Notes under the pieces: generated by a model | What the model was told of the DNA's origin: nothing | Databases searched by the model: none | What the model saw: the letters and a program-made list of their open reading frames with translations, nothing else | Part shown: positions 1,495-57,038 of the stretch, one piece after another | Numbering within the stretch: position 1 is the stretch's first letter | Layout: each line of letters starts with the position of its first letter | Made by a program: the position numbers and the translations under genes | NCBI GenBank assembly: GCA_024704765.1 | Contig: JAKMXF010000337.1 | Coordinates: 166,158 to 230,157, forward strand | From: Oopsacas minuta | Lineage: Eukaryota; Animalia; Porifera | DNA: 64,000 nt | Reading direction: 5' to 3'

Positions 1495-1529
1495 ATTTTT
1501 TGTCTATTCTTTGCATTCAAACCACTGTG
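1495..1529 (-). repeat. 5' terminal signal of RAG1-like copy A (heptamer, 14 nt, AATAG, ACAAAAAAT)
   Basis: Minus strand reads CACAGTG GTTTGAATGCAAAG AATAG ACAAAAAAT. Heptamer at 1523-1529, 671 bp upstream of the ATG. Confidence 0.75.
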
Positions 1530-2889
1530 CTATAGTAATTATTAATATAATATTAGTAGCAATATCGCGGTTAGAGATTATATAATCAGTATACGATTGT
1601 GTTTATATATTTCAACAAAAAGTCAAATACAAACTGACATGAAAATTGACTGAACCTTGACATTTTAGATTACTAGCAATTTTAGTTTCAAAAGTTAAAA
1701 ATACATACCTAGTGTATATCTAGGTGCCGACGGGCAAAGAAGTGCCAGTACAGCAACGATAAAGGACGTAGAGCGCCGATCGAAGATTCAAATCAGTATA
1801 GGAGCAATACTATATTACGTACAAAAAGTCTCATCCCAAAAGAGTCCTTGCAAGAAAAGTGCCGAGCCAGAAATTCCTGGATAAACCCCTAATAGGCGAA
1901 AAATTCGACAAAATTCAACAATTCGAACATTGATTCCTTGGCAATTTGTATAACTGCGGTCAGCTACTAGATGGCAAATCATCCGAACTGTAACTAAACC
2001 AATCACATCGAATTTAATTTAACCACAGGATTCATGCTCATTCATTAATGACTAATATGTATTTAAGATGTAAATCACGGAATCATCCAAGTTTAATATG
2101 CTTTGGTCATATAAATTCCATATTTGCATTGTCTAAAACTACATATCATTGTTAATTACAGAAATTCACGTAGTTCAGATGATGAATTATCCAATGTCTA
2201 TTCACGGGGTAAAATGTGTATTGTGAGAGAGACATACAGGTAGGTGATTGACAAAATGCATAGAGTTCCAGGGTATAGAAAATGGATAATTCACCATTCA
2301 ATTGAGGTATATTTCTGTAATACGCCATGAAATATACGTAAGTAGAGATTTATTATCTAACATATAAACTTGGTTAAATAAGGTGATTTACATATAAGAT
2401 ACATACTTTGCCATTATAGAAATTTCTCAAACAGACGATGACATTATGTATTTATAAGATATATGTAAAAATATATCAAGCTAATTTTAACCCGCAGGGC
2501 CCATCTCGCCAAATCGTGTTTCAAGACCTTTGAGACTTTAGAGGGTTGATAATCGTTTATGCAGGGCCGTACCTTGTTGGAGTATGGGGGTGTGACATCT
2601 CCCACTTTTCCCAAGTAAAAATTTCGGGGCATGCATAATTTGACAGAAAATTGTATTTGGGTATATGCTACTCAGCCTCCCCAATTTCCATTTGGATAAG
2701 GATGATGTATTCATCTGAGAAATTATCTTCGCTCTCTCACTATGCTCGCATGGTAAATATAAAATAGCACTGGTTTTCTAGCTAGCGAGGGTCCATTCTG
2801 GCAACACCAATATTCACAAGTGGCACATATTAATATGATTTCGGAACTTCGTAAGTGAATCCAAATGTTGCAATAATCGATTTATTTCG

Positions 2890-3175
2890 AACTATGTAAA
2901 TATTTGGAAGTCAGTTTAGAGAATCTCAAATGATTTTAATACTGTGTTCCATTCTGGTGCCAATAATCTAGCGATGTGCCACTTTTACCACATGTTGCAC
3001 AAATATTAATATGCTAATAAGTCCACGACATAGGCTCTACACAATTCGAAATATACATAATGGGGCAACACAGACCCGTAAGGTGAAATCGAATATTCTA
3101 TCAGAATTGTTCCATCTTATTTGAGTTTTGAGCAATTAGCAATTGAATATGTAATTGGCTCATTATCTATTTAAA
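2890..3175. repeat. Old dispersed repeat, second copy at about 16950-17220
   Basis: Shared blocks in the same order, e.g. taaatatttg.aagtcagttt, ccattctggtgcca, cagaatt.ttccatct, tca(t/a)tatctattta. Boundaries approximate. Confidence 0.5.
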
Positions 3176-4256: not shown

Positions 4257-4320
4257 TATAGCCTATTCACGGTATTCAACCATGGATTACTATAAGTCTC
4301 AGAAACTTGATAGGCAATTT
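4257..4320. repeat. Terminal fragment of the TATAGCCTATTCACG MITE family
   Basis: TATAGCCTATTCACGGTATTCAACCATGGATTA matches the ends of the hairpin element at 51792-51972 and a copy at 44216. Confidence 0.45.
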
Positions 4321-5247: not shown

Positions 5248-8077
5248 TGTTGCGTGAGATTTTAACTCATTAGTATTATTGGCCCAAGGACTGTCTTTCA
5301 CCGAGAGATTTTAACTCATCTATATTAAACGAAAGTGAATTTGCAGGATATTTGACCAGGATAATTTCAATCACTAATTTGTCTACTGGTACTCATCAGA
5401 TTTACCCGAAATTAATATGATTCGGTAGTAGAGTATTGGACGTTGTATAAAATATAATTTTCTTAAATACTTTTTAACTTTTACCTATCAATTTTGTCAT
5501 GACGAGTAGAGTCGCTTCTCTATTAAAAACGACGACCTAAAAGTGAGAATTTCAAAACTGAAATTTTGTATCTATATTTGTGACTCAAGGACGTTTATGT
5601 AAATTAAATTTATCCCAAAATTCCTTAAACTCGAGGGGATACAAGTATTCAAAGTTGAAGTCAGAGTTATATTGGAGGAGGCGAGTATCATTTACAAAAA
5701 GTAGGGTCAGTTCAAATTGATATTTGATATCCCAAATCGAACTGAAACTAGTATATTTTGATAACAATCGATAGCTGAGACATGGATGTATACCATTATG
5801 TCGTTATAATCATGAAATTCTGAAAGATACAGTCACAATGGGGTTCTAAAAATTGCATAATTGTCGTTGTTTATGTATTTCGAAATTTCAATTTTGACTC
5901 AAATTTCAAAAATCATTCATCCTCAGAATCGCCTGAAACTTTACAGGCTCCTTCTTTTATATTATATCATTCAATTTCCTTTAAAAAAAAACAAGGGTCG
6001 CTAGTACTTTTCTAATAAATATTACAAAATAATATTTTGTGAAAATGTTTTCCACTAACCATATCATTATTCACATTGTCTAGTACAATACTAGATTATC
6101 TCATAAGACTAATGAGCATGACTAACATTTACGCATGAAGTAACACTTGTCATAACTCTTCTCTTGGTTCCCTTTCTAATGTTGCTACAACAAACGAATA
6201 ATCAAACCGCAAAATACTGAAATTACGAATTACATTTTCCATTTTTATCCATCACAATGAAATATACATATTGACATTTAATCATATATCTACCTCATCC
6301 TTATTGAATCATACTTCAGTATTTCTGAAATATTCTGTTTAGAGTATGTTGTGACAAAGACATTACTGTAAGAGATGGTAACCTAGTGTAGAATTGGTTT
6401 AAGATAGTAAAACATAATATTTTGAAATACGAAACTAGGCTAAATGCCGCAGGTCAAAATACGTTAATATTGATGACAGAATTACCGTATTCAAATTTGC
6501 TTTTACAACATTAGCAAGTGAAGCATTTAAATAACAAACAAGAAAAAATGTTGTGGAAAATGACGAAGATTTATACTGAGGAATGGTCCCAAATGAAAAG
6601 GAGCAAATTAAGTTATATTAATCCATCAAGGAATAAAATAAAAATCGCTTTTAGTAGTTTTATTACAAATACGCCACAGAGCCATCCTAATTTTATAGGA
6701 TGTTCTAATCTAAGTATTAACAAAGACATGTTACCAAATATTCCTCTTCTGTTCCTAGGCATCAAATAAATTGCCAAAGTGAGATTAAGGTAATTCTACA
6801 TCTTATCTGGAAATACTTTGGCAGGGAAAGATGTAGAAACAATTAAATCAATATTTAACAAGGCATTTATTGAAAGAAGAATTATTTATAACATTGTGGT
6901 GATTGTTATGACTAAACTGGGACGAAAGATTAAAAGAATTAAAACAAGTAATCATTTTATCCAAATATAAATTTAAAGTGGGTGAAGTTATTCGTTTTGA
7001 ATACAGCGCTAACCTCACAGTCGCATTGTCCTGTGAAAATTGTATTATAATACATGCGTAGTATGGAGATATGACTTAAGAATATTAGATATGTCAAAAA
7101 TAAATGAGTATTTTTCGGTTTGATTCTTCGTTTGTTGTAGCAACATTAGAATGGGAACCAAGAGAAGAGTTATAACAAGTGTTACTTCATGCGTAAATGT
7201 CAGTCATGCTCATTAGTCTTATGAGATAATCTAGTATTGTACTAGACAATGTGAATAATGATATGGTTAGTGGAAAACATTTTCACAAAATATTATTTTG
7301 TAATATTTATTAGAAAAGTACTAGCGACCCTTGTGTTTTTTTAAAGGAAATTGAATGATATAATATAAAAGAAGGAGCCTGTAAAGTTTCAGGCGATTCT
7401 GAGGATGAATGATTTTTGAAATTTGAGTCAAAATTGAAATTTCGAAATACATAAACAACGACAATTATGCAATTTTTAGAACCCCATTGTGACTGTATCT
7501 TTCAGAATTTCATGATTATAACGACATAATGGTATACATCCATGTCTCAGCTATCGATTGTTATCAAAATATACTAGTTTCAGTTCGATTTGGGATATCA
7601 AATATCAATTTGAACTGACCCTACTTTTTGTAAATGATACTCGCCTCCTCCAATATAACTCTGACTTCAACTTTGAATACTTGTATCCCCTCGAGTTTAA
7701 GGAATTTTGGGATAAATTTAATTTACATAAACGTCCTTGAGTCACAAATATAGATACAAAATTTCAGTTTTGAAATTCTCACTTTTAGGTCGTCGTTTTT
7801 AATAGAGAAGCGACTCTACTCGTCATGACAAAATTGATAGGTAAAAGTTAAAAAGTATTTAAGAAAATTATATTTTATACAACGTCCAATACTCTACTAC
7901 CGAATCATATTAATTTCGGGTAAATCTGATGAGTACCAGTAGACAAATTAGTGATTGAAATTATCCTGGTCAAATATCCTGCAAATTCACTTTCGTTTAA
8001 TATAGATGAGTTAAAATCTCTCGGTGAAAGACAGTCCTTGGGCCAATAATACTAATGAATTAAAATCTCACGCAACA
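5248..8077. mobile_element. 2.83-kb foldback element with about 971-bp inverted arms, TGT...ACA termini and 4-bp TSD (Ginger-like, non-autonomous)
   Basis: Arms 5248-6218 and 7107-8077 are reverse complements with only a handful of substitutions (paired coordinates sum to 13325). Flanks are GAAT|TGTTGCG...CGCAACA|GAAT. The 888-bp spacer has no intact ORF. Confidence 0.8.
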
Positions 8078-9136: not shown

Positions 9137-9479
9137 TATATACAGAGTCAAATTTACTATAACTTTATTGGACATTTTCTATTCATCACTAGCAAAATAT
9201 ATGTTCTGGATATAATCCATGGCCCAAATTCCCAAACTTCTTTATTAACCACATGTATCGGATTTTGATTCTATATTTTTTGTCAGAGAAAATGCATATT
9301 CACTAAACATGGTTGGATTTTATTATTTATGATGCTTCACGCTAAATGTACCTATGTTCCACAATTTAACTCCCACGTCGATTTTCACAGTACACACTTG
9401 TCATTTTTTTCGAATTGATATGTTTTTCGTTCATAAACTCTACTAGATGCTGAAACTCATTTCCTCCCTTTGAAATCGG

Positions 9480-12387
9480 TGACTTAGAGGAGGGTCATTG
9501 AGCATGGTTACTGTATATGTTATGACATTCATTTCAATTTCGAAAACATTTATGACAAACTTAGCGATTCAAAATTATGTACAATCCACTCCGCTTAATG
9601 AAGTATCTTATACACTATTAATAACTTGGTTGACAGTTTCCTTTGTTGTTTTGAAACGATTTTCTACCAGTATTGGGTCACTATTACACAATATCCGGAC
9701 TAATACAACACCTTAATTGTTATTAAAGGATGTCTTACGAGCTAAATTTTGACCAAAACGCCGTACATACTTGTTGCAGGCTTCTAGGCACTCGTTTGAA
9801 AGATTTTTCCGACCGTACCCTCCATTATGAAGATGGATAATTTGGAAAGAAATGGGAAAGTAATTTATGCAAGGAAGGTTTCTGGTTGCCCAAGGAAACT
9901 CTATTAGAATGAATTGATATGTTTCTTTGCATAGTTCCTCAAACTTATACAGTTCATCTGTCCACCACTGTTGACCAGTCTCAACATTACTGATAGATAG
10001 GTTTGAATTACTTCAAGTCCTGGTTTGTGAATGGGATTAATTGAAGATGTAGCCCATTTCAGGAAATCTCTCTTATCCATAAAACAGTCAGGCGCCACAT
10101 TTCCAGTTGTCGAAGTACCGTCATGGCTTGGAGGAATGTCCACACCAATACTACACTTGTCTTCAATGATGGATCTAATATGTTTCATCGACACTTACAC
10201 CTTGGTGTTACCTTGCGACCATCCTTTGTAACTTAAAGCTAAATGATAAATGAATTTCATGAACCACTTGAAGAGACAAACATATGCGTGTAGTGGAGAG
10301 GTGGCTATGATGTCAATATTGGAATTGGGTGGGTAAGTTATACCAACACATTGTTGAGAAAGAAATTTCAAAAACTCTTCTTCATTAACTTCCCTGAAAA
10401 TTGCATGTGCATCCTTGACAAATCTGTTAATAAGGAATCTAGATTCAACTCATTTCAAGCTTTTAATTTGGGAGTCTGTTGCCGTACAAGGTAATATGAA
10501 GTACCTCCAGCGCCATGTAGGAGACAAACCATCCTTGTATTACAAAGAGAAGGGAATATTTGACAATTCGCTTATCTGCAACCTAAAGTAATACCATTAT
10601 TCTGATGTTCTCAGTTTCTGGGTTAATGAAAGTATTCATAATGAGTTTTACATTACTATAATCTTCTTTAAGAGCTACTAAAATTTCTGGCCTGAAAGAG
10701 AAAGGCGAATTTGGAAGCTTGTTGAAGAATACTTCACTTGATCAACATCAGTAATTCTAAGAACCTTAAATCCAACAGGATGAAGCTTTTAGTAGATAGA
10801 TTCGGATTTAGATTAATTTGGTTGTAGATGCGATGAGTAACTGGCCCATCTGACCATTCTACATTGAGAGGATGTTGTGAATCGAAAATTGAATCTAAGC
10901 TATTCAGCATAAGTTGAATAGTGAGAGAAAGAATTGAATGATAAGATATTGATATTTCAACTGAGAAAATTCAAGATTATTTAATATTCCCATTTCGTTA
11001 GCTAATGATATTTCGTGCGAAATAGCGTATTAGTTTTGTAAGATTGTAATTTCACCTCTTTTTTCACCCTTCAAGACTCTTTTGAGCTCAGAATATCTTG
11101 TTGCTCCAATTTCTAAGATGTCTAACAAATACGTTGATTTCTGAATAGATATTTTAGTGACAGCTTTAGTAAATGAACTCGTTTCAATTATTTCTTTACA
11201 TACACTTGAAGTATTCATTTCATATATTTCATTGGAATCAATTCCAAAGCTAGAGCAATAATTCTTTTGGGTTTGACTTCCTCTCTCAAAGATTTCAAGT
11301 TAATATGTCCATGTAGTACCTTTTGTCTAGCTCTTGAAGTTTTTAAATTACAATTTAAATGTGTAACCTTAACTCCACAGTGGTATATTCGGAAAATACT
11401 TAACAAGAGAAATAGAAAATATAGAAAGGACCTCAGAACTAGAATAATCTGAAATACTTTTTTCGAAGATGCTTCTCCTTGAATGGAATAGGATGAAATA
11501 GAATTTTCCTAGGTATCTAGAACATTCCTTTTTCGGGAGGATTCCCTAGATTTTCGGAGTACATTGAATTTGTGACGAAGTATTTGGCTGTCCTGCTCCA
11601 AAAGAAAGTGATTTTCGAAGAGAAGACGGATAGATTTAGTGATATTTCTTTCGTTGGCCAAAGTATCATAGGCTCCCTTGTTTGTTATATATTCAATTTC
11701 ATTTGTGAAATTGTAGACTATATAATACAGATTCTAATCATTATTATGTAAGCAATATCAATACTCATTATTATCAACCAATATTCTTTCTAAAATGAAG
11801 GCAATTTGGCACAATAGCTTTGTTGTACAAAAGGGGCCAAAACATCTTTGTCGGATATCTTTGACTCCAATTATCATTTGCCATGGAAATATATTTGGGC
11901 GCTTTGGAGGGTCTAGAAATCATTGAAAAAGAATCTTATATTCATGAATGATACAAAGATCCAAAAAATCAAACTTGAAATTGTTTGCAATATAAGATCA
12001 GCGACTATAAACTTTGGTATTTTGGAGGAAATTATCTAAATGTAGGCCAACAAAGACATTCATAAAATAATATCTGGGTCGTGGTTAAAATTGTTCAAAT
12101 CAATTAAGAATTGTATGTCAAATAGATAACAGATTATAAAGTTCACATTAAAGTGGCATGTGTTCACATATAGCAATAACTTTGAACAAAAGGATATTTA
12201 CTGCTTCGAGGCATGGAAATTACTAAATAATGCATTTGTTTGAGGCTTTTCATGTCCTGTTATATTTCTATAAGGCGTCTAATAACATCATATTTCTTGG
12301 TTAGAAATAGTGTAGAATCGAATACAAGCATAAATTTGATAAATATCAATGTCATATATTCCTATCACCGCATGATTCCACACTGTG
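9480..12387 (-). mobile_element. Decayed RAG1-like/Transib transposon (copy C) with intact 5' end
   Basis: Fragments YLLDILEIGATRYSEL (11030-11218), GVDIPPSHDGTSTTGNVA (9904-10194) and LSNECLEACNKYVRRFGQNLARK (about 9735-9810). 5' terminus CACAGTG-14-GATAG with heptamer at 12381-12387. 3' end not found; left boundary approximate. Confidence 0.8.
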
Positions 12388-12979: not shown

Positions 12980-14720
12980 CACAGTGTGATAGAATGACAA
13001 TTCAGCCGTAATAGGTTTATATTTTAACAATAGCTTCATTAATCTAATATTCATACAGAGGAAATCTACTGTATAGATTCCAAATATCAGATCAGATTTA
13101 AGCCACAATTAAATACATATAACTATGGTGAAATACACCATCAAAAATGATATCCTGTACCTGTCGCTGGAAGTATGGATTAATTTTACCCTTCCTAAAC
13201 CTATAGCTAGCCAGTATTGGGTCATTACAACTTAATAAGCATGTTTTCATATCGCGAAGATTATCCGTGAATGAAAATTTTGAGTTAGGTTTTCCCGAAA
13301 GAGTCTCACATATTTGTTGCATGATTCTGAAAATTGCACAATAAATAACCATTGTTCTATTTCTTAAGAATTTGGTAAGAATCAGAGAGAAATTTATGCA
13401 GGGAAGGATTTATGTTAGCCCATGGGATCTCTCGTAGAATATATCCATATGTTTCCTTACATAATTCTTCTAACTTAAGCGTGTTGATAAACTCATTGGT
13501 ATTGACTAGCTAGAATATTACAAAAAGATTGCTTTGTATTACATCTCAACAAGCTCTATCATTTGGTCCTAATAATGAGGTTGTCTACTCGAGAAATTCT
13601 CTCTTAGTCCTTAGGAATCACAAGGCACATTTCCGGTTGAATAGGTACTGTCATGTGGAGAAGAATATCTACCCTGAAACCACACTGTTCATCAATTATT
13701 AATAGAACTTGTTTTCATTGACCTTTAAGCTTCAGGTTTGAGCGTGACCATGCCTTTGTCCAGCATCCAATTAGTATTATATCACCAGCTTAAACAACCT
13801 AAGGACACAGAGGTAGCATATAAAGGAGTAGGTTTCGAATGTAACTAAATATGTTTACTGTATAGTAAACAAGTTTATTATTGGGAACACATTTCCCAAA
13901 AATGGTATCCCGAAGGATCTTTGACTATAATGATTTCTTGCGCAAAGCAAATTCTCTTCTAAATGGGGAAACTAATTAATAGAATGTAGTTTTATTCATT
14001 CACTCTTTAGTATTACTTAAGCTCCAAATATTTCGTTGCTCTAATCTCATCGAGTAGATATGCAGATTTTACTATTGATAATTTGAGTAGTTCATATCTA
14101 TATGAGCATCTCAATGGTCTGTATTGCAAATGTTAGAAGATTCTCAATTATGCTTTTATTAGAACCAAGTTGTAAATATAGTGCAACGAGTTGTTTGACT
14201 GTTATATTCTCCCTCTGCTAGGAAATAAATGTGTCTAAGAATGACGCTAAGTCGGATCCATAAGTTTTAGATTAGTTACCAAAATATGTTCTTTAAATCT
14301 ATGATAATATCTTCAGAGAAATTTCTTTTTGCTGTAATAGCTAGCAAAGAATGAATCTCTGTCTCCGAATCAACAGAAATTCAATCCCTACCAGAACAAT
14401 TGTTTAGGGAAATTGAATAAAAGTAGGAATTTTCTCAAGTTTCTAGTTCATTCCGTTTCCTAAAACTTTCTCGTGCAGACATTAGAGATTTGTACCTATA
14501 ATGGAGTCCTGCAGTGTCTTCCTCTGGAAAGAGATTCTGGCCAATCAGCTTTTTTGAACAACATTACTAACCTTGCGGCTATATGACAGATATATTGAAT
14601 TTAGTCAATTATGGAAGGAATAATTTTAGACAGAGATATGATGTTTGTACATATATATTGGTTTGGTATGGTACTGGCAGGTCCAAGAAGTGGCATCTCA
14701 ATTGAATCTTAAAAACACCA
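12980..14720 (-). mobile_element. Decayed RAG1-like/Transib transposon (copy D) with intact 3' end
   Basis: CACAGTG (12980-12986), 23 nt, AATAG (13010-13014). C-terminal remnant KFSFTDNLRDMKTCLLSCNDPIL (13098-13352) and a D(G)TYSTGNV remnant near 13630-13660. Right boundary approximate. Confidence 0.7.
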
Positions 14721-16720: not shown

Positions 16721-16809
16721 AAACACTGCGGATATTTGAATATGCAAATGATAATATTCCTAAAAGAACTATATATCTATGTTACTCAACACTAGCATGA
16801 CTAAATCGA

Positions 16810-20600: not shown

Positions 20601-20903
20601 CTAGTAGACGTTCTAAGCTCCAAGGGTTAATATTTACTAATTAGGAAGATTAAAATGCAGGTATTATTACTTGTATCACGTAATATAATTGTGGAATAAA
20701 CACAATTCCACGTAATCTTATGAACCTCCAATTCCAATATGTATATATATTCAATATGCAATGCCTATACTACTCAGTTCTGAGAAACGGAATTTTGTTT
20801 ACGTCAATAGATAGAATTTCAAAAATGATACTTCAAGCTTCGCAGACTATTAAATTACATTCTTTGAAATGGAATAATACAGATTGGTTCAGATTGCGAA
20901 TAA

Positions 20904-21079
20904 CTAACGAGACAAATAACTAACAGGGCATGTGACTAACAGGACATGCATCTAACGGGACACGTGACTAACAGGACATGCGACTAACAGGACATGCATC
21001 TAACGGGACATGTGACTAACAGGGCATGTATCTAACGAGACACGTGACTAACAGGACATGCAACTAACAAGACACATTT
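20904..21079. repeat. 16-bp tandem array, 11 units (consensus CTAAC(A/G)GGACATG(T/C)GA)
   Basis: Unit starts every 16 nt from 20904 to 21064. Single copies occur at 17752, 17916, 18104, 18128 and 21231, all in the same orientation. Confidence 0.9.
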
Positions 21080-21716
21080 ATTTTTTACCTGGCGAAAGAC
21101 ATAAAGTGGAAACAGAAAAAATGAAATAATGTAAGTCCTCCTGTCTAAGTCCTTTAAGAAAATATAACTTTTCAGATAGATTCAAGTCAATTCTCACTTC
21201 AAATCAAACTTCTGAGTGGTCTATCTGTAACTAACGGGACTTCATATATATAAAATTTAAATCACAAACTAAAATTGTAAAATGAAAAGATACAGTCAAC
21301 TTTATATAAGAATATAGTTCAGACTCGTTACCATTATATATAATTAAAATTTAACTAAGGTTATTGAATATTTACCTTTAGGATATTACATGTCGCCCAA
21401 CGTCTAAATGAAATTTCGAATCTTAAAGAATTCGCGTGTGGCAGAATACTTCCGGCGCAGCATCTTTTTGCAAGGATGGTTCACTATTCTGACCACCATT
21501 TTGACACTTTAAGGTATTTAAATACCGAAATATAATAAGAATTTAGCTCTAGATATGATTGGAAAATTTGCGTTATGTTGCGTTTAGGGTGGAATTGTTG
21601 TGTTGTGATTCGTGTTAAGCCTAAATCGAGGAACTTACGAATATTCTTATATACTTAAGTAGAATACGGAATTTTGTATAAATTGATGATCTCTAAGTCT
21701 TCTGAAATTTCGATAA

Positions 21717-26956: not shown

Positions 26957-27723
26957 TTAAACAACAAGAATATTCTGCAGAATACTAAATTCGATTTCAC
27001 GATGTATATTCACATCTCTAAATGATAGGCCACCTATAGTATGATGCCCTGGACGAAAACAAATCGCCTTTAAAACAATATATTCAGATCCTTGAGTAAT
27101 CAAGTCTGTTAATGTAAAATTCGATTTACCACACCAATGAAAGATCAATGGAAAATTTTGCAAACATATTTGCAAACTTAGAGTACAATTGCTGACATTT
27201 TGGATAAGAATCTTTACTTCAAATGTTTTGTAACAATATATGACACCAGGTATTTCTAATATATATATTCGAACAAAATGTGAATTCTTTAAGGGTTTGT
27301 CTAGATTCCCTGTTTGCAATCTTCCTCTCTGAATAATATTGTTTCTCCATGTAATATCCAGCTTACCCATGTCTTTGGAAGAAAGGAAGAGATTCCCTAG
27401 TGGAGAAATTTTAAATAAATAGCTTATTGTCTCTTTAGGTTCAATTTCACAGTCCGGAGGCTCGGTGGTATAATTTGTATGAGAAATCAAGGGCTTAACT
27501 TCATATTTGGAAAGTGATCTGAGGGAAAGTCCATCTAAGCAGAGTTTCTGATGTGTCATATTTTGTATTCGAGACTCAAGAATGGTAAACTCCAAATATT
27601 CTGGGGAAACATACTTGGTCTTAATATCGATCGGTTTAATTACATCAAAAGAAAATGTTTTCTGTAAATGCATCTTCTCACTATTAAATAAATACATGAT
27701 ATTAGCCAGGATTGAATGAGTAC
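26957..27723 (-). CDS. TRAPPC13: TRAPPC13-like, terminal coding exon
   Basis: ORF 26957-27697 has FSFDVIKPIDIKTK, GKLDITW...RGRLQT, HWCG and GHHTIGGL, matching the TRAPPC13 pattern. A pyrimidine tract and AG acceptor at 27724-27725 extend it by (G)THSILANI. Confidence 0.85.
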
Positions 27724-28304
27724 CTATAAAGAAAATGACAAGATCAAAAGATAGAAAAAAATACAGGTTACGTAATACGAAGCATAAAATTATTGTCTAG
27801 CACCAACAATTACAGAGATGCCAACTTTACGTTCCAAATGCTGATCATTACTGAAATACAACTATGGTAGGATGATCACGTCATAATTGAAAAAAATCAC
27901 GATGTAAATATGCTAACAAAATTTTTGAAAAATGGCAATTGCAAATAGTGCATATTCTCAATATATAGGGTATTACTACTCATAGAATCCATACTCGTTC
28001 AGATCATCTGACATAAAACAATTACTCGGTTAAGTACCAGGGGTTGTAAGTTTCTGTATATTTTTCGAACATTTTCATTTCGAATAATCTACTCCTTTTA
28101 GATATCATAATTGTAACAAATATGTATAGAAACCATACCGAAATTGTGTAGGAATAGTGGAATTACTCAATAATATAGTTGGAATAATTCCCAAAAATGA
28201 TCAATTTGTGACCAATTATCCCATCGATCGTCTCGCGATCCAAAGACATTATTGAAAGAAATTTTCACAATAAAATTACAGGTATAAATATTTTACTCGA
28301 AATA

Positions 28305-29215: not shown

Positions 29216-29219
29216 TATA

Positions 29220-31026
29220 CAGTAGAAACCGGATATTTTTAACCCCGGAAATTTTTAACAACCGGATATTTTTAACAAATTTTTGTGAAAAGTCCATTAT
29301 TCCTTCGGATATTTTTACTTTATTGTCAGTTTACTTGGTGAATATTCCTTTCTTAGCCATGTCCTCCCAGAAGCGCTTGTCTTTAGCTCAAAAGTGTGCC
29401 GTTATTGCTGCATACAATGCACCTGTTGGCGAATATAAGAGATCTATCACTGAGCTGTCCAAGGTTTATGATGTTTCGAAACTGGCCGTGAGCTATATCC
29501 TGAAGAACCAGGAAAAATTCAAGGGTACATTGAAGGCTGGGATGCCCACCAAAAGGTTCAACACTCGTCCTCCATTGAAGTACAGCTTGATTGATGGCCA
29601 CCTCATCGACTGGTTTACAGCCCTGCGGGCTGCTAACAAAGAGATCAACGACCAAATCATGATACAAGCAGCCAGAGAGATTGTCCAAAGGCTTGGAGCT
29701 GGTGATCCTGAGGGTATGAACGAGTCCTGGATCCAGAGATGGCGCGAGAGGCATGGGGTCCACTACAAAACCCTCCATGGTGAGGCTGCAGAATGTCCTG
29801 ACTTTGAAGAGTGGTTGGTGGCCATCAGGCCCATCCTGAGCAGGTATGCCCAACGGGATATCTATAATGCTGATGAGACAGCCTTGTTTTGGAGGATGTC
29901 TGAGGGAAAGTCTTTTGTGGCTGCCAAAGAAGCTAGGGTGGCTGGCCGGAAGACGAGCAAGTCGAGGGTTATGCTACTTATTGGATGCTCTATGACTGGC
30001 GAGAAACTTCCACTTTTGTGCATCGGTTCTGCCAAGAAGCCTCGCTGGCCTGTAGTGTTAGGCAAGAAAGCTGATGCCCCTATAGCCTACGCCAGTTCAG
30101 GAAAGGGTTGGATGAATACTGCATTTTCAACAAGTGGCTACAGGAATTCAATGGTAAAATCACAAGGCAGGACAGTGCAGGTTGCTCGTAGACAACTGTC
30201 CTGTACATCAGGGCTTGTGCGAGAAGTATGATGGAGTGAAGGCAAATCTCAGGTTAGTCATGTTGCCAAGAATACAACTGCAAAGCTTCAGCCCTGTGAT
30301 CAGGGAGTCATCCGGTCCCTGAAAGCCCACTACCGAGGCAAACTTGCCAGACTCATCCTCAACAAGGAAGCCAAATCTGTCTCCCTCTATGAGGGGCTCT
30401 GTATGGTTCGTGTTGCCTGGAGTCAAGTCACAGGAGAAGTGGTGGTGAACTGCTGGAAAAAGTCTTGCCTGAATGATGGAAAAGATCAGCCTGATGTTGA
30501 TGAGGCGGAAGCGGCAGATAAGGATCTGGATGATGTGGACGAAGTAATGAGGATGGCTAACATAGAGGATATGCAACCAGTGGCTCACGAGCCCGTTCCT
30601 GATCTCGAGGCATTACTGGCTACCTTGGCACTTCATACGGATGTTAGGATAGAGGACACTGCCGAACCTTCTGATAGTGACGAGTCTGACATGGGTGAGG
30701 ATGGGGATGAGAAAGCTCTTGCCTCGAATGCCGATTGCCTTAAGTTTCTATCTCGGATCAAGAACAGGCTAATCTATACTACTGGTCAGACCCCTGATTG
30801 CTTGGTGGAACTGCAATCCATTCTCATGCACCAGCCGCAGCAACAGGCCAAGATAATCCAATTCTTCCCTTTGCAGTGAAAAGGAACGATGAGTAGATAG
30901 CTGTTCAAACACTAATTTACTGAATATTTATAGATACCGTTGAGTTATAGTTGTAGTAGTAGCTAAAATCGGATATTTTTCAAAATTTCGTGCAAAGAAT
31001 ATATTAAAAATATCCGGTTTATACTG
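29220..31026 (+). mobile_element. Pogo/Tigger DNA transposon, full length, 1807 bp
   Basis: 23-bp TIR CAGTA(G/T)AAACCGGATATTTTTAA with 1 mismatch, TA flanks. Confidence 0.92.
29359..30879 (+). pseudogene. Tigger-like transposase (CENP-B HTH + DDE), frameshifted near 30120-30290
   Basis: MSSQKRLSLAQK..., WIQRWRERHG, IYNADETALFW, GKGWMN, then LLVDNCPVH and NTTAKLQPCDQGVIRSLKAHYR in other frames, and an acidic tail in ORF 30403-30879. Confidence 0.88.
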
Positions 31027-31688
31027 TATATACAAAATTGTACTTCCAAATAATAATATGTAAATAAATATTGTTTATGAATCATATACGTTTGTGGTTA
31101 ATTGGAAATGCAGAGAAAAACTCCTCAATATGTCTTTCTGAATGAATGCAAAAGGAATTTGCGGAGCTTTAAGCTCGTAATGAAAATTGAACAGTAAAAA
31201 TTAGTGCTGACGTAATTTAACACACATCTTGATGACAATAATTTTAGTAACTGTTATTGCCTTAGTGCAGAGTAGAGAATACTACGAAATATTGGGATCA
31301 CATTGTGTCTTTATGGCGTATTTAGCAAATTTCAATCATGAATAAATGTATTTTTCTGGTTCCCAATTGTGGATTTAATTGGAAAATCATGATGATAGCA
31401 TGTATAGCCCAAAGGATTTGGATAACAGTAATGAAAATAAACAAACTTTTACAGCATTTTCAGAATTTAACCACAATGGAAAATATCTATATACTTTAGG
31501 AACGATTATATCTCTACTATAACTTGTTAAATATAATTTTAAAGATTAATTGGACATATTTCCTATATTCAAACAGTGTATACTATAATGTAAGAGTATT
31601 TTGGTGTCCTCAATTTTTCTTGGACTTTCTAGCATTGACTGAAAGTGGAAATTGTATAGTTAGTAAATGTTGATTGGAGTGCTGTGTC

Positions 31689-34600
31689 CACAGTGGGTTA
31701 ATAGGGCAGTTAGTAAAGAATAGCTATTTTGGTGTGAGATAGCCATATGAAATGTATTATTTACATATAGATTATAATATATAAGGAACCAATACATCTT
31801 GTCACAACAAGTATATGGCCTAAATATTCCAAGTTATGCCGTCATTGATATACATAAAAATTTTAATTTTCATCAATAAATACATTTTACTCGACTTTAT
31901 CGCCATGAAATCTATTAATTACATATTGGTTGTCCGTATTTGGCAAGACCTTGAACTTAAAATTTTGTTATAGGGCTTGTATTTATAGAGTTATGACGTC
32001 TTCAGAATTATGACGTCACACTTATGATGTAATTTATCTTATTGATTTACAAAATATACATCATACTCATACTTAAGTTCATGATAGGCAATCAGTATTG
32101 GAGGTTAAAGTCGTGAATAAAGTCTGTATACAAGTTTTCTGATTGTTCATAGCATTGCAGCATTTAGATCTCGTTGTGTGTCCAGATTGACCATATCGTT
32201 CACAAGTCAAAATTCTTCGATAGTTTACTAAGGTTGGATCACTTCGAGAGGTTAATCTGACGAAGATATCCATAATATTGGTCTCAAAACTAACTTTACG
32301 AGCTAAATTCTCACGATATTTTCCAACTAATTTGTTGCATGATTCTGTGCCTTCTTCTAAAATGCCTTTAAGCCATAGCCAGAATTCGACTCACGTATTA
32401 ACTCCTCGGAAAGGGCCAAGTGCTTGTTGCAGGGTTGGAGTCATGCTAAGCCAGGGGAAAGAATCTAAGATGACAAGGTAGGTATCCCTCCACAATTTCC
32501 CCAATTCCAAAGTGTTAACCTTGTGACTTGAATTGAAAACTCGAAGAATGGCTGAAAGCTGAGTATGTATCTTTGATAAGACTGGGCGATATTGTATTGT
32601 TACAGTTGATAGAATGCATCCAAGGTATTCAGTTTCATCAGAAAAGGCTCTTCTAGCAACATTCCATGTTGAGGTGGTTCCACCGTTAGAATTAGACTGG
32701 TCAACCTTAACCCTCTCTTCTCCTGAATAATGTTTGAAGGAATTTCATTGACTCCTTGATAACTGGTGAAGTTGGGGACCAGGTAAACTTTTCGATGCGA
32801 AGATGATATACCAGCAAATTGAACCACCTAAAATTGGTTTAATTATGTGAAGATAAATTCTGAATGATTAATGGAGTACTAGATTACTTACCTAAATACG
32901 CCTGTGTATGAATGGAGTGGAGATGCTGGATATATGTTAATCTCTGAAATTGGTGCATGAGTTAAATTGAAGCGTTCATTAGTCGAAAGAGCAAGAACGA
33001 CTCAATGTCATCAATGTGCGAAATATCTCGATTGCATCTGTGATATTTTTGTTGATGGGAACCCTCAAGAACTAAATTCCGATCCTTCAAACCTTTGTGT
33101 GGCAGTGCACATCTGACAACTGGCTCCTCCAGCTCCAGAGAAAATGGCTGCCATCTTCCCATCAACATTGAGTGGATAATATCGACATTGACAACACCAT
33201 TTTCTAAAGGAATCTCATTTCACAACATCACTGTATCGGGATAAATCATAGTTTCCATGAAGGAACGAATATTTTGCATTCTGTCGCAGCGCAGGGAAAA
33301 ATATGTCTTTGAGAGAAGGGTGAATTAGGGGATTTACTCTGCCAAACAATCCTGTTTGTTACAGTGTGGATGGAGATGGGCTTGAAACAAAATAGAATGA
33401 AGTTATTTGGTGAAAGTATTAGTTGCCTGCTGGTTGTAGATAGCGTGACAACCAGAACCATCTAAGCCATCTGCGATGTTAAATGTGAGTGGGAATTCTT
33501 CACCTGTGGGGTGATCTACCATTGACAATATTCTTTCCAGGGTTTTCTGAACTTGAAGACAATATGGTGCGTGTATACCTACTGGTTTAGCTGGATTAGG
33601 ATACAAAGTTATACTGGATCGCGAAATCATGACATCTCTCAGGTTACTAGCTTGCTGTAAGATGGGAAATGTATATTGTCTGGTAGAAGTGTTTGACGTA
33701 GTTGAGTGTATCTTCGTCTGCCCACTTCAAGTAAGTCTAGCAGGAATAAGGCTTTATCAACTGGAACATGCTTGTTACTGAGGTTACAGAATCTTCCACT
33801 AACAATAATCTCTTTGGCTACCGTAGCAACCTGACGATTATTCTCCTCATTTGCCAATAGTTGTTATGAGAGTGCTGCAACGCTTATTTCTGTAGTATTC
33901 TCAATAACTGGGAGTGACTTAATAAATTCTAGCAGACTTGACAATAGAGTACGCTGTTGCTGCAGAGAGATATCATCAAGATGCTTCCTATGTCTCACTG
34001 AATGAGTGGGAACTTCACCATCATCAGAAGACGAATCTAGTAAATCAGAACTACGATTTTTCTTTAACTCCCGTTTCATGGAAATGTTAGAATGCTAACA
34101 TTCTCCTTCTAAACAATCTAAAGATTTCTTCGTCTTCTTGAATCTGTTCTGAATTCTTAACAGCAACGTTTCCAAGAGTTTCTTATTATCAGAGTCTATT
34201 TCAAAGTGTTCTTTGAAATATTTTGTCGTTTTCAAGACACAATTATTATTGTCTTTCAGGATTCTCGCCAATTCGAGGCGGGACTTTGGGAAAGTTAACT
34301 CTTCTGTCATTGTTTTCAGCAAATTCCGAAAAATATGTATTATTCAGTAGATTATATATATCAGTCGCTATAATGAATTTCAAGAACGAAATTCAATACT
34401 ATTTCATTCAATTGTTGCAGTATGCTACAATGGGAATTTCCTAGCAACGAAAAGTTGTAATAGAATGTCATTGAAAATTATAGGTTGCACACTGTTTCGG
34501 GTTTTGTGGTTTTAGATTACGTTTTAGGAATCGTAATGCGTGTATCCGATTCATTTTGCGCTGTTGTTTTGTGTTGTTATTTTTCGCGACACTTTAAGTA

Positions 34601-34960
34601 TTCCTCTTTGTAAAAATTCTGTAAGGATTTTACTAGATTTTAGAAATCTTATGTTCACGAAATATATACAAAATACAGTCATGAAAACAAGATATTTAGA
34701 ATTAGCATAGTCGAAATGTATAAAGTATACCAGATTAGTGGCATTCGATTATGTAATTGCTGTAACAGATTCATTTGAAATTGGGGTTAAATTTAGAAAC
34801 CGTGAAGCCGCAATTTTCACATAAATATTTCGCATCTTTGATGAAGAAATTTTACACCTTTTAGGGTCTCAATCGCTTAGATATTTTAAATGAAAATCAT
34901 TTAAACAATTTAAAGTGCATTTCTGGGGAGAATGTACAATTCCGACACTCTATTAGCTAA
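31689..34960 (-). mobile_element. Near-full-length decayed RAG1-like/Transib transposon (copy B) with intact 3' end
   Basis: Fragments across 32079-34322: RHRKHLDDISLQQQR, LLDLLEVGRRRYTQLR, IADGLDGSG, VDGKMAAIFSGAGGA.C..C, GGTTST.NVARR, EEGTESCNK, SDPTL, CERYGQSGH. 3' terminus CACAGTG (31689-31695), 23 nt, AATAG. 5' heptamer not found; right boundary approximate. Confidence 0.85.
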
Positions 34961-35744: not shown

Positions 35745-37048
35745 CGAGGGGCACTCGAAAAGTTCTGACGTTAGATATGAAACCATCAATCTGTCGAATA
35801 TTTTTCCGCATCCATCTTTCAGACATATTTTATTACTCTACTTTGAAACTTTCATTCATTTATCCCTCCTACTTTCATAAATTAGATAATTTCAGTATAC
35901 ATAGCTTCTAAAATGTCACAATCTAAATCAGATCTCACAAAACGTGACTTCGAGCAATGATTTTGATCTTATTCAAACTACACAAAAGACAAGAGTAGAA
36001 ATCTATGAATCTTTACAGGAACATTTCCCGAATATAGCTCCTTCTCTAAGTATAGTTGAACGATGGTACAGGGAATTTATTCACGGAAACTTCGTTCTTG
36101 AAGATGCCCCTCGTTCAGGAAGACCGAATATTTCATATAATGAAGAAAATGTAACGAAATGCTAGATCTAATTACTAAAGATCCTCATATTACGTACGCT
36201 CAGTTAGAGTATGAAACCGAGTTATCATCGGGAACTAATAATATCATTTTTCACAAAGAGCTTTGTGTCAGGAAATTTGTGCCCGATGGATCCCCCATTC
36301 TTTGAACTTACAGCAAAAAATATCCCGCATAGACTTTTGCAAAATTATGCTCAAAAGGTTTGCTAATGGAAGTTAAAGAGCTGTTTCTGAGATCCTAACA
36401 GGTAATGAGACATGGATATACCATTATGATCCAAAAACAAAGCGAATGTCAAAGGAGTGGGTTGAAGAAGATGCCCCACCTCCAACCAAAAATGCGGAGG
36501 GCTAGATTTGTTGGGAGACAAATGTGGGCGATTTTTTTCAGATCTAGTGGGTTTATCGAAGCTGTTGCTCTCGAGGATAGAAAGACTATTACTGCCGACT
36601 GGCACACTACAGTGTGCCTACCCAAAGTCATCACAGCAATTGAGTCACAGATAGAGAAGACAGGCATTAGAGGAATTCTTCTTCATCATGATAACGCATC
36701 ATCGCATACGGTAATCAGAACTCGTGAGTTTTTGGAAAATTCTGGACTCAAAACATTACCTCACCCACCCTACAGTCCTGATTTAGCCCCTTGCGACTTC
36801 TGGTTGTTCCCTAGACTCAAAGATCAATTACGTGGAAGGAGATATTCGACTAATGAGGAGTTGAGAGGGGCACTTTTCCAAGCGATCGGAGACATACCCA
36901 AAGAAGAGTGGAAAAATGTTTTGATAATTGGTTTACCAGAATGAAAATGTATAGATTGTCAAGGAGAGTATTTTGAAAAATGTAATAGTCAATTTCATTA
37001 TCACTATTGATATGTCAGTCAACGTCAAAACTTTTCGAATGCCCTTCG
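35745..37048 (+). mobile_element. Mariner (DD34D) element, full length 1304 bp, transposase disrupted
   Basis: 28-bp TIR CGA(G/A)GGGCA(C/T)TCGAAAAGTT(C/T)TGACGTT with TA flanks. Motifs DAPRSGRP, ETWIYHYDP, HHDNASSH, YSPDLAPCDFWLF. Confidence 0.92.
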
Positions 37049-38052: not shown

Positions 38053-39419
38053 CAGGGTGGTCCAAAATAAAGTGTACCCGTGCATGTTTTGCACCACTCA
38101 AGTTACAACTTTTCTTCCAACTTTATACCGTTTTAGCAAATGTCAAATACAACTCCTACGCCGAAGCAATACTCTCTTTGGAATGTAGAACTTAAAGCAT
38201 TCGCCATTGAGAGGTACATGGAGACGAAGAGTTTCCATGTAACAATACGCGATGTTGTTGCCAAGTTCAACGCCGTTACAACACCCTACAAATCACTCAT
38301 TGTCAAGTGGGTAGCCAAGTTTAGGAAAGAAGGGACAGTCAGGAACCTTAACTCAAAAATCCCGAGTCGAAATAGTCACTCAGGACGAAAGGGGAAGCGG
38401 GATGAGGTGTTTATCGACCGCCTGCGAGAATCCGTACAAGAGTCACCACACAAATCGACGAGAAGGAGGTGTCAAGAACTAGCTTCCTCACGTTCTACGA
38501 TGTTAAGAGCGATTAATGAAGACCTAAAATTGTTTCCCTATCGCATTACCATCTACCAGAAGCTCACAGAAACTGCAAAGATGAACAGGCTGGATATGGC
38601 GAAGGTTTTGGCTGACAAAATCAAAAAAACAAAGAATTTTCTCCAGCTTCTGTGGACAAGCGATGAGGCTCATTGCTATCTTGAGGGGGCGGTAAACTCT
38701 AAAAATAGCATCTATTGGGGTTCTCAGAGACCAAACGAGTTGATAACCAAGCCTCTTCACTCAAAGAAGGTCACAGTTTGGTGTGCTCTCTCTGAGAAGG
38801 GCATTATTGGCCCATATTTCTTCGAGGAAAATGGAATGACGACCAGCATCAACAGTGAACGCTACATTGTGATGCTAGAGAGGTTCTTGGAGGACTTGAA
38901 ACGTCTCTTTCCCAGTAATTGGCAGAAGATGTGGTTCCAGCAGGACGGTGCTTCTCCCCATGCAGCTCAAAAGTCCCTGGATTGGCTTAGAGTTCACTTC
39001 AAGTCCAGGATCATCAGTCGCAAGTGTGAGATCGAGTGGCCCCTTATTCGCCCGACCTGAGCCCCCAGATTTTTTCCTGTGGGGCTATATTAAAGACAGG
39101 ATATACCAGAACAACCCCAAGATACTGGAGGAACTAAAAACTAACATAAGAACCGTTATCAGAAGGAAAACAAGACCAGTATTGAAGTCCGTCGTGCAAA
39201 ACTTTACTATGCGCCTCGGAAAAGTAATAAATATGAAAGGAGGACACATGGAACATCTACTCTGAATGATTGACCCAAAGCAGCAACAAGAATGTCGAAT
39301 TATTTATTTCATGTAATTTGTCTATATATTATAACAAACTTCTTTGATTGTTCCAATATCTAACATATATCCCAAAATTGAAAAATTTTGTCGGGTACAC
39401 TTTTTTTTGGACCACCCGG
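38053..39419 (+). mobile_element. Rosa/VS-type (DD41D) Tc1/mariner element, full length 1367 bp
   Basis: TIR C(A/C)GGGTGGTCCAAAA.AAAGTGTACCCG with TA flanks. ORF 38140-39060 has WTSDEAH and FQQDGASPH. Restoring small frameshifts near 39040-39070 gives 41 residues to the third Asp (PDFFLWG). Confidence 0.88.
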
Positions 39420-53239: not shown

Positions 53240-53808
53240 TACCTTGTCAAACCCATAGCATGCTAGAGGCCAGTTTCAACATGTTATCAGGAATATTTGG
53301 GCGCGTAGAGTCCGATTTTGAGGATTCACCACCTGAAAATTTCACCGATTTATCATTGAGTTATTACATCAGATGAGTATGAGCAAATATCCCCAAAAGA
53401 TGCCAGCGATATCGTTTCAACTGTACTCGATGGATGTGAATTCCAATATTGAATTATTAAATATACTAGCGCGCTTCGCTTGCTAGGTCACGGCGCGACA
53501 TCTTGGACCTCGCGTTTAGCTTAAGTATACATTTGCAAAAGTCCCCAAGTGCTATTGATCGATTAGCAACCGAGAATACTAGACGTCTCAGGCCTAGAGT
53601 ACATAAATAGCGGAAATTTTAGATTTTATCTCGAAAATGACATTTAATGGCATTATGTGGGAAAGTGGAGCTCCTGCTGTATTGGTAATTGATATGGGGA
53701 CTGGTAAACCGGAGTGTAATATAATTTTAGAAATTTGGAGAAATTAATTATATATTGGTGGTATACTAATTCAATAAAATGTAATGCGGGAAGAAATCAT
53801 CACGTCAG

Positions 53809-56800
53809 CACAGTGGCTTCACTAGTGGAAATGGACAAAAATTCATTTTCTGGAATTCAATTCAAAGTTTTACCAACTCAACCAGCATAGTCAAAAACCT
53901 ATGAAATTACATCTCGAAGCTAAATTCCTTCTCAGGACTTTAGTTAAGGTACAAGGGTATAAAATAATTCTAGGAAATGTTTGTAGTTTCATAGAATGCA
54001 ATATACTTTTCAAAAGCCTAATTCTAACACTATTAGCGAAAGGAGAATTTCATGCTCTTTCAATAATCTTCCAAATTTTCATGTAAGAATATGGGGTTGA
54101 ACGTTTTGGGCCTTATAAAAAAGTTTCGAAATCTCTTAGTGTGCACTATGTTGACAAATGATTTGAAAATAGTTTACATTCCGCCATGGCCGGTCACATC
54201 CAATCTGAGGCCCCCGTTCCCTAAGATAAAAACATGAGATGTCAACAGTCATTTGATATAACAATAAAATCATGGTACTACTTATATTTCCTAGAAGAGG
54301 ACCTTCCTACATTTAGCTCTGGCAAACTCTTCAAATATGTGGGGAAAAGTTAAGTTCATTACAAAGCTCGTACTCTATCGAAACTTCTGCCAGTCCATTC
54401 AAGTGATCCTGGTACATTGTTGATGGCAGGAAGTTTTTAATCAATTTCAAACGAGAGAAGCTTCTCTCCCCTATCGCCACTGTGACTGGTACAGTTAGAA
54501 GTATCCTCAGAGCAATGCTGAGGCTAGGGAAGAGATCCACCAAATTTTCCGGTATATGTAATCCAGCATGTCTAAGAGCCAATTAGACATTTCAATTGAG
54601 AAGCTTGTTTTAGCTAAGCTGACCTATAGATACAGATCATCAGGATCGATGTCACCCATCTCCTGAGAAAACGGTAGACATATTTAGCGCAATGGACTGT
54701 TTTGAATGCTTACCTCATCTCTTTACTACTAAAAGAAAGTCAAACAAAATGTAAAAAGAAAACAGCTGTAAATTCTCCCTGTAAGAGTAGTTAGGGTTGC
54801 TTCAATTAGTGGGAGAAAGAACTCTCGTTTGAATGTCTCTTCAGGTGACAAAGTCGGGTTATCGTCTGGAATTTCATAGTCAAACATAACTTTTTCCTTT
54901 CTACGTCTCTGCACAGGGAATGTCAATTCAACCCCAACCTGTTGTAAGATTTCTCGTGCGGATATGCTAATGTTGAACTAAAAACAATAGCAACCTACAT
55001 CCTATAGCTATATGCTCATGAAGCTAGGAACCATGATCATGTAAATTCATGTAAGCAATAGATTGAAATGGGACATTCGGAATTATTGTTAGACTATTAC
55101 CATTGGACAAGTCAATATTTTTGCTAGATTTCTTGCAAGTCGGGAAAGCCAAAGTAGACTAAAATGTAAGGGGCTATGTAAGTCAGAAAACATTATCTTC
55201 CATCTCTACGATAAAATCTCTGAATATCGTGAAAGTAATATACTCCCGCTCTCATCAAATATTCCACGAAATTAAGTGATAGAAGAATTGGCATGGGAAT
55301 TTCCTATAGCGCCATCTTAACGCAGACAGTATTATAGTTGTTTGAAATTCTTCTTCAAAATTTGGTTCTCAATATCTATTGAGGTTGAAGATATCAGATG
55401 GTTTAGATGGCTCAGGATGTCATAAAATTTATAACAATTTGATCGCATACCAACTACAAGGCCAAAACTTTCTTTCTCTTTGGGTTAAAAGTTTGGCCCT
55501 CCTTCACTCATCTTCGACTACAATTTGGTCAAATGAGCTACAGAATTCACCTTTACGTGTACGGCCATTTGTATTAAAGGCTAAAAAAGAAAATCCAGAG
55601 AATGTGAAATTCCTAATAGAAAGCCTGATCATCTCTGAAGTGGATTCAATTGTACTGGAATTTATCATACTTCAAGGGGTTTATTAAAAGTGACATTTCT
55701 TCGTACCACGATAGATGGTAAGATGTCAGGTATATTAAGTGGAGCCGGTGGCGCCCATTGCCAACTTTGTACAGCTAACAAATGTGAATTGAAAGATTTA
55801 GCAATACTAAGATCCAGATTTTCCATTTAATAGGAGTATTTCTTGTGAGAAAGAAATCTTTTCCATAGTTGATGAAGAAGAATATCTTTCACTTCCTTCG
55901 GTACAATGTCATGGATTGACCCATCCACCACTGTCAAGTATTGATATTATTCCAGCATCTCCTCTACATACATATGCCTGTGTCTTCCATTGGTACATGC
56001 TATCAATATGCCATATTGGTTCAAGAACATATAAATGGATACCTAGTAATAAAGTAATAGTAGATTCAATGAAGTTTACTAAAGAATTATCAAATATGAA
56101 GACTGGCTTAAATATAGATCAGCCAAGCAGTGATGGAGGGACTTATTCAACTGGAAATGTAGCAAGATTGTGTTTTCTCAATAAGAAAACTTCATTTATA
56201 TGGTTAATACTATGATTTCGCAAGAATTAAGGGAATCAATACCTACGTTGCAAACCAGCCTCTCTGTACTAGTACGTGTATTCAAATCTGATCATGCAAT
56301 CGATACGGACAAATTAGACACACTTTGTAAAGAGACATATGAATAAATACTTATTGCTTTTCCATGGGCAAGTGCAACAACTTCTCTTCATAGGCTCATA
56401 GCTCATTCTTCTTAAATAATACGAGATTATAAGAACGGTTCCGATTAAAAGACTTTTCAGAGGAAGCAGTTGAAGCTTGCAATAAATTGATAAGGAAGCT
56501 TAGTGAGCATCTATCTAGAAAGTTTATTTGCACTTCAAACGCAAGAGATATATTTGTATGTTTTCTGAACCAAAGTGACCTTGTCCTACCAAATTACTGC
56601 AACTAAATGCACTACAAAATCTGTGGAGAATTTGGATATACTTGTCGCTGGAGAACTAGTCATCTGCAGCTTGTACCCCAAGAACAAGTTGCTATGTTCA
56701 ACTGATTAAATATTGATAATTGACTCTTCTAATATATATTTTCACTTAGTATGAGCAAAAATATGAAAGAAATAGTACATTGTCTACAGATCATGTGGAA

Positions 56801-57038
56801 AATATTATTAAACTTCGTGCGTCACTAAAAATAATATTATTGAACCACAATTTCAATCATTGTATCCAAATTTAAAATATTAAAATAGATTTAATCTAGC
56901 TAACTACTAATCTACTTCAATTTTAATAGTTGCATCCAACTCGTAACTACCGATTTGCTAGGCATCAATAATACATTCCATATAGCTAAGTAGTAAGTTA
57001 ATACCTATTAATTTTAACCCCTAATTAAAGTCACTGTG
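53809..57038 (+). mobile_element. RAG1-like/Transib transposon with both ends and 5-bp TSD (copy E)
   Basis: GTCAG|CACAGTG-14-AATGG-ACAAAAATT ... CTATT-22-CACTGTG|GTCAG. Interior about 54975-56700 encodes decayed LPLDKSIFLLDFLQVG, ISDGLDGSG, TTIDGKMSGILSGAGGAHCQLC, PASPLH, GGTYSTGNVAR, LHRLIAH, SEEAVEACNK. Confidence 0.92.
54185..54970 (-). pseudogene. hAT transposase 3' remnant nested in RAG1-like copy E
   Basis: ORFs 54729-54926 (RRRKEKVMFDYE...FKREFF) and 54331-54582 (LRILLTVPVTVAIGERSFSRLKLIKN). It occupies the position of the missing N-terminal codons of copy E. Confidence 0.75.

Follow-up and report, generated by a model that had tools for sequence, protein, structure and literature searches.

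Unequal ends with two spacer classes in probable Transib transposons of the glass sponge Oopsacas minuta

In a stretch of 64,000 nt from the genome of the glass sponge Oopsacas minuta (assembly GCA_024704765.1, contig JAKMXF010000337.1, positions 166,158-230,157), hereafter the window and the frame of all coordinates unless a locus is named, the transposon copies called here elements A to E present six ends, which most probably are bipartite and asymmetric terminal inverted repeats (TIRs) of one Transib clade of O. minuta, within which several lineages have diverged. The elements of this clade in all likelihood encode a transposase resembling the RAG1 core and carry no RAG2-like gene. An architecture like that of RAG's recombination signal sequences (RSSs) is supported by two spacer classes tracking the polarity of the gene across lineages, by an inner box covarying between the two ends, and by a homologue of the RAG1 nonamer-binding domain (NBD) in the transposase. 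Unequal ends as such are not new, since they have already been published for Transib and RAG-like transposons; what the present analysis adds is the covariation of the box in four lineages, support from sequence and structure for an NBD homologue, a 3' end conserved over ~90 nt, and an element boundary confirmed by read depth.

The ends and the polarity of the gene

The tip of each end is formed by the heptamer CACAGTG, beside which stands a brief G(B)TT that is conserved; further inside follows a 9-10-bp box specific to the lineage. On the one hand, a spacer of 14 nt separates the heptamer from the core of the box in element A (1504-1529, minus strand; CACAGTG at 1523-1529, AATAG at 1504-1508, full box AAAGAATAG at 1504-1512), in element C (12362-12387, minus strand; GATAG, with the box GCGGTGATAG, a variant of the lineage box GGGGTAATAG) and at the first end of element E (53809-53834, plus strand; AATGG). 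On the other hand, a longer spacer precedes AATAG in element D (12980-13014, plus strand; 23 nt; box GCCGTAATAG) and element B (31689-31723, plus strand; 23 nt; box AAAGAATAG), the coding strand being minus for both, as well as at the second end of E (57005-57038, read on the minus strand; 22 nt). Element E is a complete although decayed copy of 3230 bp (53809-57038, plus strand), flanked by the exact target-site duplication (TSD) GTCAG at 53804-53808 and 57039-57043.

With a relative of 717 aa as the query, tblastn placed the transposase remnants of A, C, D and B on the minus strand and those of E on the plus strand, so that the short-spacer ends all lie upstream of the gene, i.e., they are 5' ends, and the long-spacer ends all lie downstream, i.e., they are 3' ends. 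Decayed remnants extend over 9692-11236 (minus strand) in C and 54969-56558 (plus strand) in E, and, together with the 5' untranslated region (UTR), over 32211-34917 (minus strand) in B, where the 5'-terminal 61 bp, 5' end included, are missing past 34917. Element D is a 3' remnant only, with just C-terminal residues of the transposase at 13280-13545. As such, the six ends read as the initial annotation had described them, with spacers of 14 versus 22-23 nt, and the strands of the remnants agree for A to E with its claim that the spacer class follows the orientation of the transposase.

Outside the window, 11 loci were sampled by means of N-terminal transposase fragments, hence independently of the ends, in O. 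minuta and five ENA assemblies; the homologues of the N-terminal open reading frame (ORF) of element A are annotated by NCBI as O. minuta proteins on GCA_024704765.1. The loci fetched provided 10 additional elements, either TSD-flanked or paired, which together with E form a set of 11; these copies share descent and represent about four independent box types rather than independent samples. A 5-bp TSD is exact in 9 of the 11 elements and shows one mismatch in two others, and the flanks of L011b do not match. The heptamer is CACAGTG at 22 of the 23 ends examined and CACATTG at the remaining one; at L002, where it has decayed to CTTTGTG, the 14-nt spacing to the box is still kept. For L006, which holds the only intact ORF of 717 aa, a 5' end was not found in the locus. 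In the gene-oriented loci, exact hits to the short class are all upstream and on the strand of the gene, and five of the six exact hits to the long class are downstream and on the opposite strand. A relaxed scan tolerating two mismatches was noisy and returned no pairs of the same type, the sample being too small for a test of a pairing rule based on miniature inverted-repeat transposable elements. Counted from the heptamer to where the box closes, the distance is 19 nt in 5' ends and 27-28 nt in 3' ends, i.e., a difference of 9 +/- 1 bp.

A box that changes by lineage at a kept spacing

The inner box falls into distinct types. AAAGAATAG is found in elements A, B, L001, L003, L004, L005, L008a and L008b; GGGGTAATAG in L007, with C and D bearing variants of it; TAGGCTTTAG in L009; and AGGGAGTWG in L010 and in L011b, the latter (L011 13480-14833) being an internally deleted copy of 1354 bp with one short-spacer and one long-spacer end. 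Under a 9-bp shift, the 5' ends best match the 3' ends of their own lineage, with 11 matches versus at most 9 for L007, 13 versus at most 10 for L009, and 12 versus at most 9 for L010, which indicates repeated replacement of the box, through which the two ends kept matching each other and the offset remained 9 +/- 1 bp. Such covariation between ends is the strongest evidence at hand and points to the box as a predicted binding site of the transposase, the spacing of which would be under selection. The motif that had first been described as just 5 bp long is thus better regarded as the core of a longer, lineage-specific box.

Respective to their age, the copies in the window share just 67-77% identity in patches of DNA, which indicates several old lineages, and the transposases of lineages sharing the layout are just ~25-60% identical per aligned piece. 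The 5' end of A is also present in L003, L001 and L002 (92-75% identity), and L007, a relative of C, has the same end layout with an exact TSD. Column identity reaches ~100% in the heptamer and 87-92% in the motif and is lower in the spacers, at 57% (5') and 67% (3'), so that the spacers are just partly free; of the initial statement that spacer lengths are conserved when sequences differ, the first half stands, to within +/-1 nt, and the second has to be qualified. In several lineages, the box of the 5' end is directly followed by ACAAAAAAT or ACAAAAATT (window 1495-1503 on the minus strand and 53835-53843), which resemble an RSS nonamer, stand 19 nt from the heptamer and occur at 5' ends only.

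As the original sample comprised six ends, with a motif of 5 bp, in AT-rich DNA, and as the copies share ancestry, chance or a neutral inherited indel devoid of function could be suspected behind such a layout; this explanation is highly improbable. The window contains 13 CACAGTG when 4.2 +/- 1.9 are expected, a count reached by none of 100 shuffles. Over the 238 kb of window and loci, the distance from heptamer to distal motif, which the initial annotation had proposed to plot genome-wide, is sharply bimodal, AATAG falling behind the 43 CACAGTG sites at offsets of 13-14 (n=6) and 22-23 (n=9) against ~0.07 expected by chance per offset. The best shared 9-nt block sits 8-10 bp deeper in the 3' end than in the 5' end in 10 of the 11 elements (shuffle expectation 8.8%), and the block matches at 9 of 9 positions at this shift in five elements (shuffle expectation 0.7%); the best-9-mer test replaced an earlier 21-nt diagonal count, which was too diluted. 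Chance is rejected by this block test, the offset distribution, the matching within lineages and the heptamer count, and a neutral indel fits neither with a box that changed in at least four lineages as spacing and end-to-end match were kept, nor with spacers that stand at 57-67% column identity and vary in length by just +/-1 nt.

An extended 3' end

In all lineages, the 3' end is conserved over ~90 nt, i.e., beyond the heptamer and the box. Additional blocks, namely AATGTATTAT and ATAGGTTATCG, lie at ~63-72 and 79-89 nt (window 31751-31777 in B) and could be either further binding sites or a polyadenylation region.

The outer limit of the 3' end of B is marked in sequencing runs. In contigs from runs of the same organism, word depth is ~44 in the flanks of B and 700-2800 within the element; the change occurs precisely at 31689, the position at which seven contigs that differ in their flanks part from one another, which confirms the element boundary there. 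The family is also present in two other coded organisms, at 80-99% likeness, where the flanks of B are absent. In all four runs, the 3'-terminal 120 bp (31681-31807) have 2-6x the contig depth of the interior of the element; possible reasons for this excess are numerous copies reduced to the 3' end or otherwise non-autonomous, conservation across lineages, or spread between species.

Many DNA transposons have functionally unequal ends. It is quite possible, though somewhat less likely than not, that the asymmetry of the sponge ends is functional without any pairing rule, the two ends having different jobs, on the promoter side for the 5' end and on the polyadenylation side for the 3' end, or serving an ordered assembly or cleavage; pairs of the same type would then still work, just less well. 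The conserved ~90 nt with the extra blocks at ~63-72 and 79-89 nt, the A-rich block that follows the 5' box in some lineages, and the 3'-terminal 120 bp being the deepest part in all runs are in line with such a division of labour, which on the other hand leaves unexplained why the same box is kept at both ends, with a difference in depth of 9 +/- 1 bp, through at least four box replacements.

The transposase

Uninterrupted elements of the clade measure 3.0-3.4 kb and contain neither a second long ORF nor a RAG2-like gene; a 5' UTR of ~0.7 kb and a transposase gene of ~2.2 kb fill them, so that there is no room for RAG2. Considering the protein, P0158 (the relative of 717 aa) matches the HzTransib transposase of Helicoverpa zea (6pqn, E 1.3e-22) and the amphioxus RAG1L protein BbRAG1L (6b40, E 1.9e-9), and the Pfam RAG1 model scores 18.6 bits on the sponge transposase, under its cut-off. 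Residues 417-465 of P0158 align with BbRAG1L and fall in the gap between the two segments matched by HzTransib.

In element A, the transposase ORF covers the N-terminal 286 codons (1-858, minus strand) and extends past the edge of the window; it encodes a helix-turn-helix (HTH)-like domain, then a linker that is disordered, then the NBD homologue (~residues 107-180), and lastly the first part of the DDBD. A profile built from 47 N-terminal sequences matches the RAG1 NBD, both within 3jbw (E 1.3e-4) and as the isolated domain 3gna (E 1.7e-3). In an AlphaFold model of these 286 residues (mean predicted local distance difference test, pLDDT, 84), residues 107-232 align to mouse RAG1 391-510, i.e., the NBD and the start of the DDBD, with 19 RAG1 entries retrieved at Z 7-8; Foldseek alone gave weak E-values for RAG1, the residue ranges being those of a structural re-alignment. 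HzTransib aligns to the model from residue 183 only, i.e., from the DDBD onward, the solved protein being devoid of the NBD-equivalent part.

Two other modules deserve attention. At the C-terminus, P0166, L008b and L004 carry the tail CxxCxxxGHxxxxxC, a CCGHC zinc knuckle like the CTT of RAG1L proteins, on which the Pfam match to zf-CCHC_6 is weak. At the N-terminus, residues 4-74 (window 640-858, minus strand) form a three-helix domain that is confidently modelled (pLDDT >90) and weakly resembles the HTH of the Mos1 and SETMAR transposases and the paired homeodomain (Z 2.6-3.7); Pfam gave no match on the N-terminal 286 residues, the three-helix domain included. This domain may be another part of the protein by which subterminal sites are read.

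A proposed synaptic complex and the question of a pairing rule

Under an RSS-like reading of the ends, a dimer of the transposase would place its catalytic core on the heptamers and its NBD-like domain on the two inner boxes, possibly assisted by the knuckle at the C-terminus or the HTH-like domain at the N-terminus. The 9 extra bp of the 3' end would then impose a structurally asymmetric synaptic complex, as for RAG with 12/23 RSSs.

Several observations weigh against this reading. Element E is the sole exception among the 11 elements, as no clear box common to both of its ends is found at a shift of 8-10; AATGG does stand at 14 nt in its 5' end, as first annotated, and is a weak version of the motif. 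The 3' spacer is two-thirds conserved, and the 3' end as a whole is richer in information than a heptamer and a box. The match statistics of the NBD homologue are modest (E ~1e-4, Z ~8, Foldseek E >0.06), and the GRPR/K motif is absent from it, a conserved RK (x-x-R-K, as in HRK, TRK or SRK) being present in all lineages. Lastly, it is we who infer that the box is read by the NBD homologue rather than by the zinc knuckle or the HTH-like domain.

In RAG, E649 of RAG1 helps couple cleavage. The residue at the corresponding position of the sponge proteins, in the motif PNS-x, is P, T or L, so that the coupled-cleavage residue of RAG is absent. This bears on a stronger proposal than the RSS-like architecture itself, namely a strict rule of the 12/23 type, in which a short end and a long end would both be required for cleavage or transposition, with the NBD dimer enforcing this without RAG2; such a rule is doubtful. 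It would account for spacer classes each held within +/-1 bp across lineages with different boxes, it would make use of the NBD homologue present in the transposase, and it would agree with the retention of one short and one long end by the 1354-bp deleted copy (L011 13480-14833) and with the preference of ProtoRAG for its own asymmetric 5'/3' pair (Tao 2019, PMC8289069). Autonomous copies, however, owe their combination of a short and a long end to descent, and the short/long pairs seen in 11 of 11 elements are therefore no test of it; non-autonomous copies, for their part, are sampled too sparsely, with one short derivative (L011b). The offset of 9 bp differs from the ~10.5-11 bp of one helical turn, the E649 position holds neither E nor Q, and RAG1 without RAG2 has no 12/23 preference (Yakovenko 2021, PMC8355894). 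That a RAG2-less sponge Transib truly enforces 14/23 short/long pairing by means of a dimer of the NBD homologue is, all in all, rather unlikely.

Were a pairing rule nonetheless true, Transib transposases encoded by a single gene would have discriminated between asymmetric signals already at the base of animals, and the core of the 12/23 rule, the origin of which has yet to be settled in RAG evolution, would not have arisen late as an adaptation of RAG1/RAG2. The sponge clade offers a natural test set in this respect, since the offset is kept, the box is swapped and both candidate DNA-reading modules are in one protein.

Comparison with known Transib and RAG-like systems

Ends of the 12/23 type were reported for several Transib families by Kapitonov and Jurka (2005, PMC1131882, Fig. 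4C), with RSS12-like 5' termini and RSS23-like 3' termini, namely in Transib5 of D. melanogaster and in Transib2_AG and TransibN1-N3_AG of Anopheles, and a hypothesis was later built on such ends (Yakovenko 2021, PMC8355894). The sponge elements resemble these families in their single gene, 5-bp TSD, CAC heptamer and second conserved block, and in the same polarity, with the short spacer at the 5' end and the long one at the 3' end; they differ by their hexactinellid host, by an offset of 9 +/- 1 bp instead of ~11, and, as far as a comparison by description goes, by a lineage-specific box (e.g., AAAGAATAG) in place of an A-rich nonamer. The analogy with RAG drawn in the initial annotation is retained for the architecture, i.e., two spacer classes, a covarying box and an NBD homologue, and loses its novelty, 12/23-like ends being already known (PMC1131882).

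In Subgroup I Transibs, known from ctenophores, Hydra and bacteria, the TIRs are asymmetric and the protein has both a CTT1 tail and an NBD-equivalent domain (Tao 2022, PMC9435367). All three are found in the sponge elements, the tail being CCGHC, and like Subgroup I they may be closer to RAG1L than classical Transibs are, as the alignment of P0158 417-465 suggests. A further trait of Subgroup I is a retained alpha11-alpha12 segment of the zinc-binding domain, to which these residues, lying between the HzTransib match segments, may correspond. Sponges are named neither in that paper nor in the supplementary files searched, and no paper on sponge Transibs was found in the literature searched. 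Current models (Martin 2023, PMC10462144; Tao 2022, PMC9435367) posit an ancestral element in which asymmetric TIRs were combined with an NBD and a CCGHC tail; the present data add Porifera to the hosts of such elements and leave the overall picture unchanged.

Among RAG-like elements with both genes, AanRAGL of Aureococcus anophagefferens has bipartite TIRs with 4/13-bp spacers and a 5-bp TSD (Tao 2022, PMC9435367), thus sharing with the sponge elements the 9-bp asymmetry exactly as well as the TSD length, and differing by its RAG2-like gene, its terminal sequences and its protist host. PflRAGL-A of Ptychodera flava has a 10-bp spacer asymmetry and combines NBD and CCGHC in one protein (Martin 2023, PMC10462144); it has in common with the sponge elements an RSS-like heptamer, the asymmetry of spacers and the joint presence of NBD and tail, whereas it carries RAG2L, GRPR/K in the NBD, E at the RAG1 649 position, and an AT-rich nonamer followed by a TR2 block.

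Considering RAG1/RAG2 itself, the likeness to 12/23 RSSs extends to an identical CACAGTG, a two-part signal, two spacer classes within +/-1 bp, and homologous NBD and catalytic core; unlike RAG, the sponge elements are without RAG2 and without GRPR, their offset is 9 instead of 11 bp, and they are mobile with TSDs. Of the solved structures, HzTransib (PDB 6pqn) matches best by sequence; it likewise has heptamer-type ends and a 5-bp TSD, but its TIRs are described as symmetric (PMC8289069).

Other features of the window

In element C, the 3'-terminal ~90 bp are lost, their expected position being ~9420-9450; CACTTGT at 9395 was considered as the 3' tip and rejected, as it has no homology to the end of D. 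Within E, between the 5' end and the transposase remnants, a fragment of a hAT-type dimerisation domain (54331-54582, minus strand) is probably a nested insertion.

Elsewhere, an inverted repeat of 971 nt, with arms at 5248-6218 and 7107-8077 that are 99% complementary and separated by 888 nt, is a distinct and young element, either foldback-like or a transposable element with long TIRs. Further transposon remnants lie at 28302-30231, 36405-36944 and 38140-39060, and include a Tc5/pogo-like ORF beside nested inverted repeats, a DDE_3 fragment, and an HTH-only ORF between inverted repeats of 43 nt. Host coding sequence is represented by an exon at 26957-27697 (minus strand) for the middle and C-terminal domains of TRAPPC13, and a tandem array at 20887-21110 consists of ~14 copies of the 16-nt unit ACTAACAGGACATGYR.

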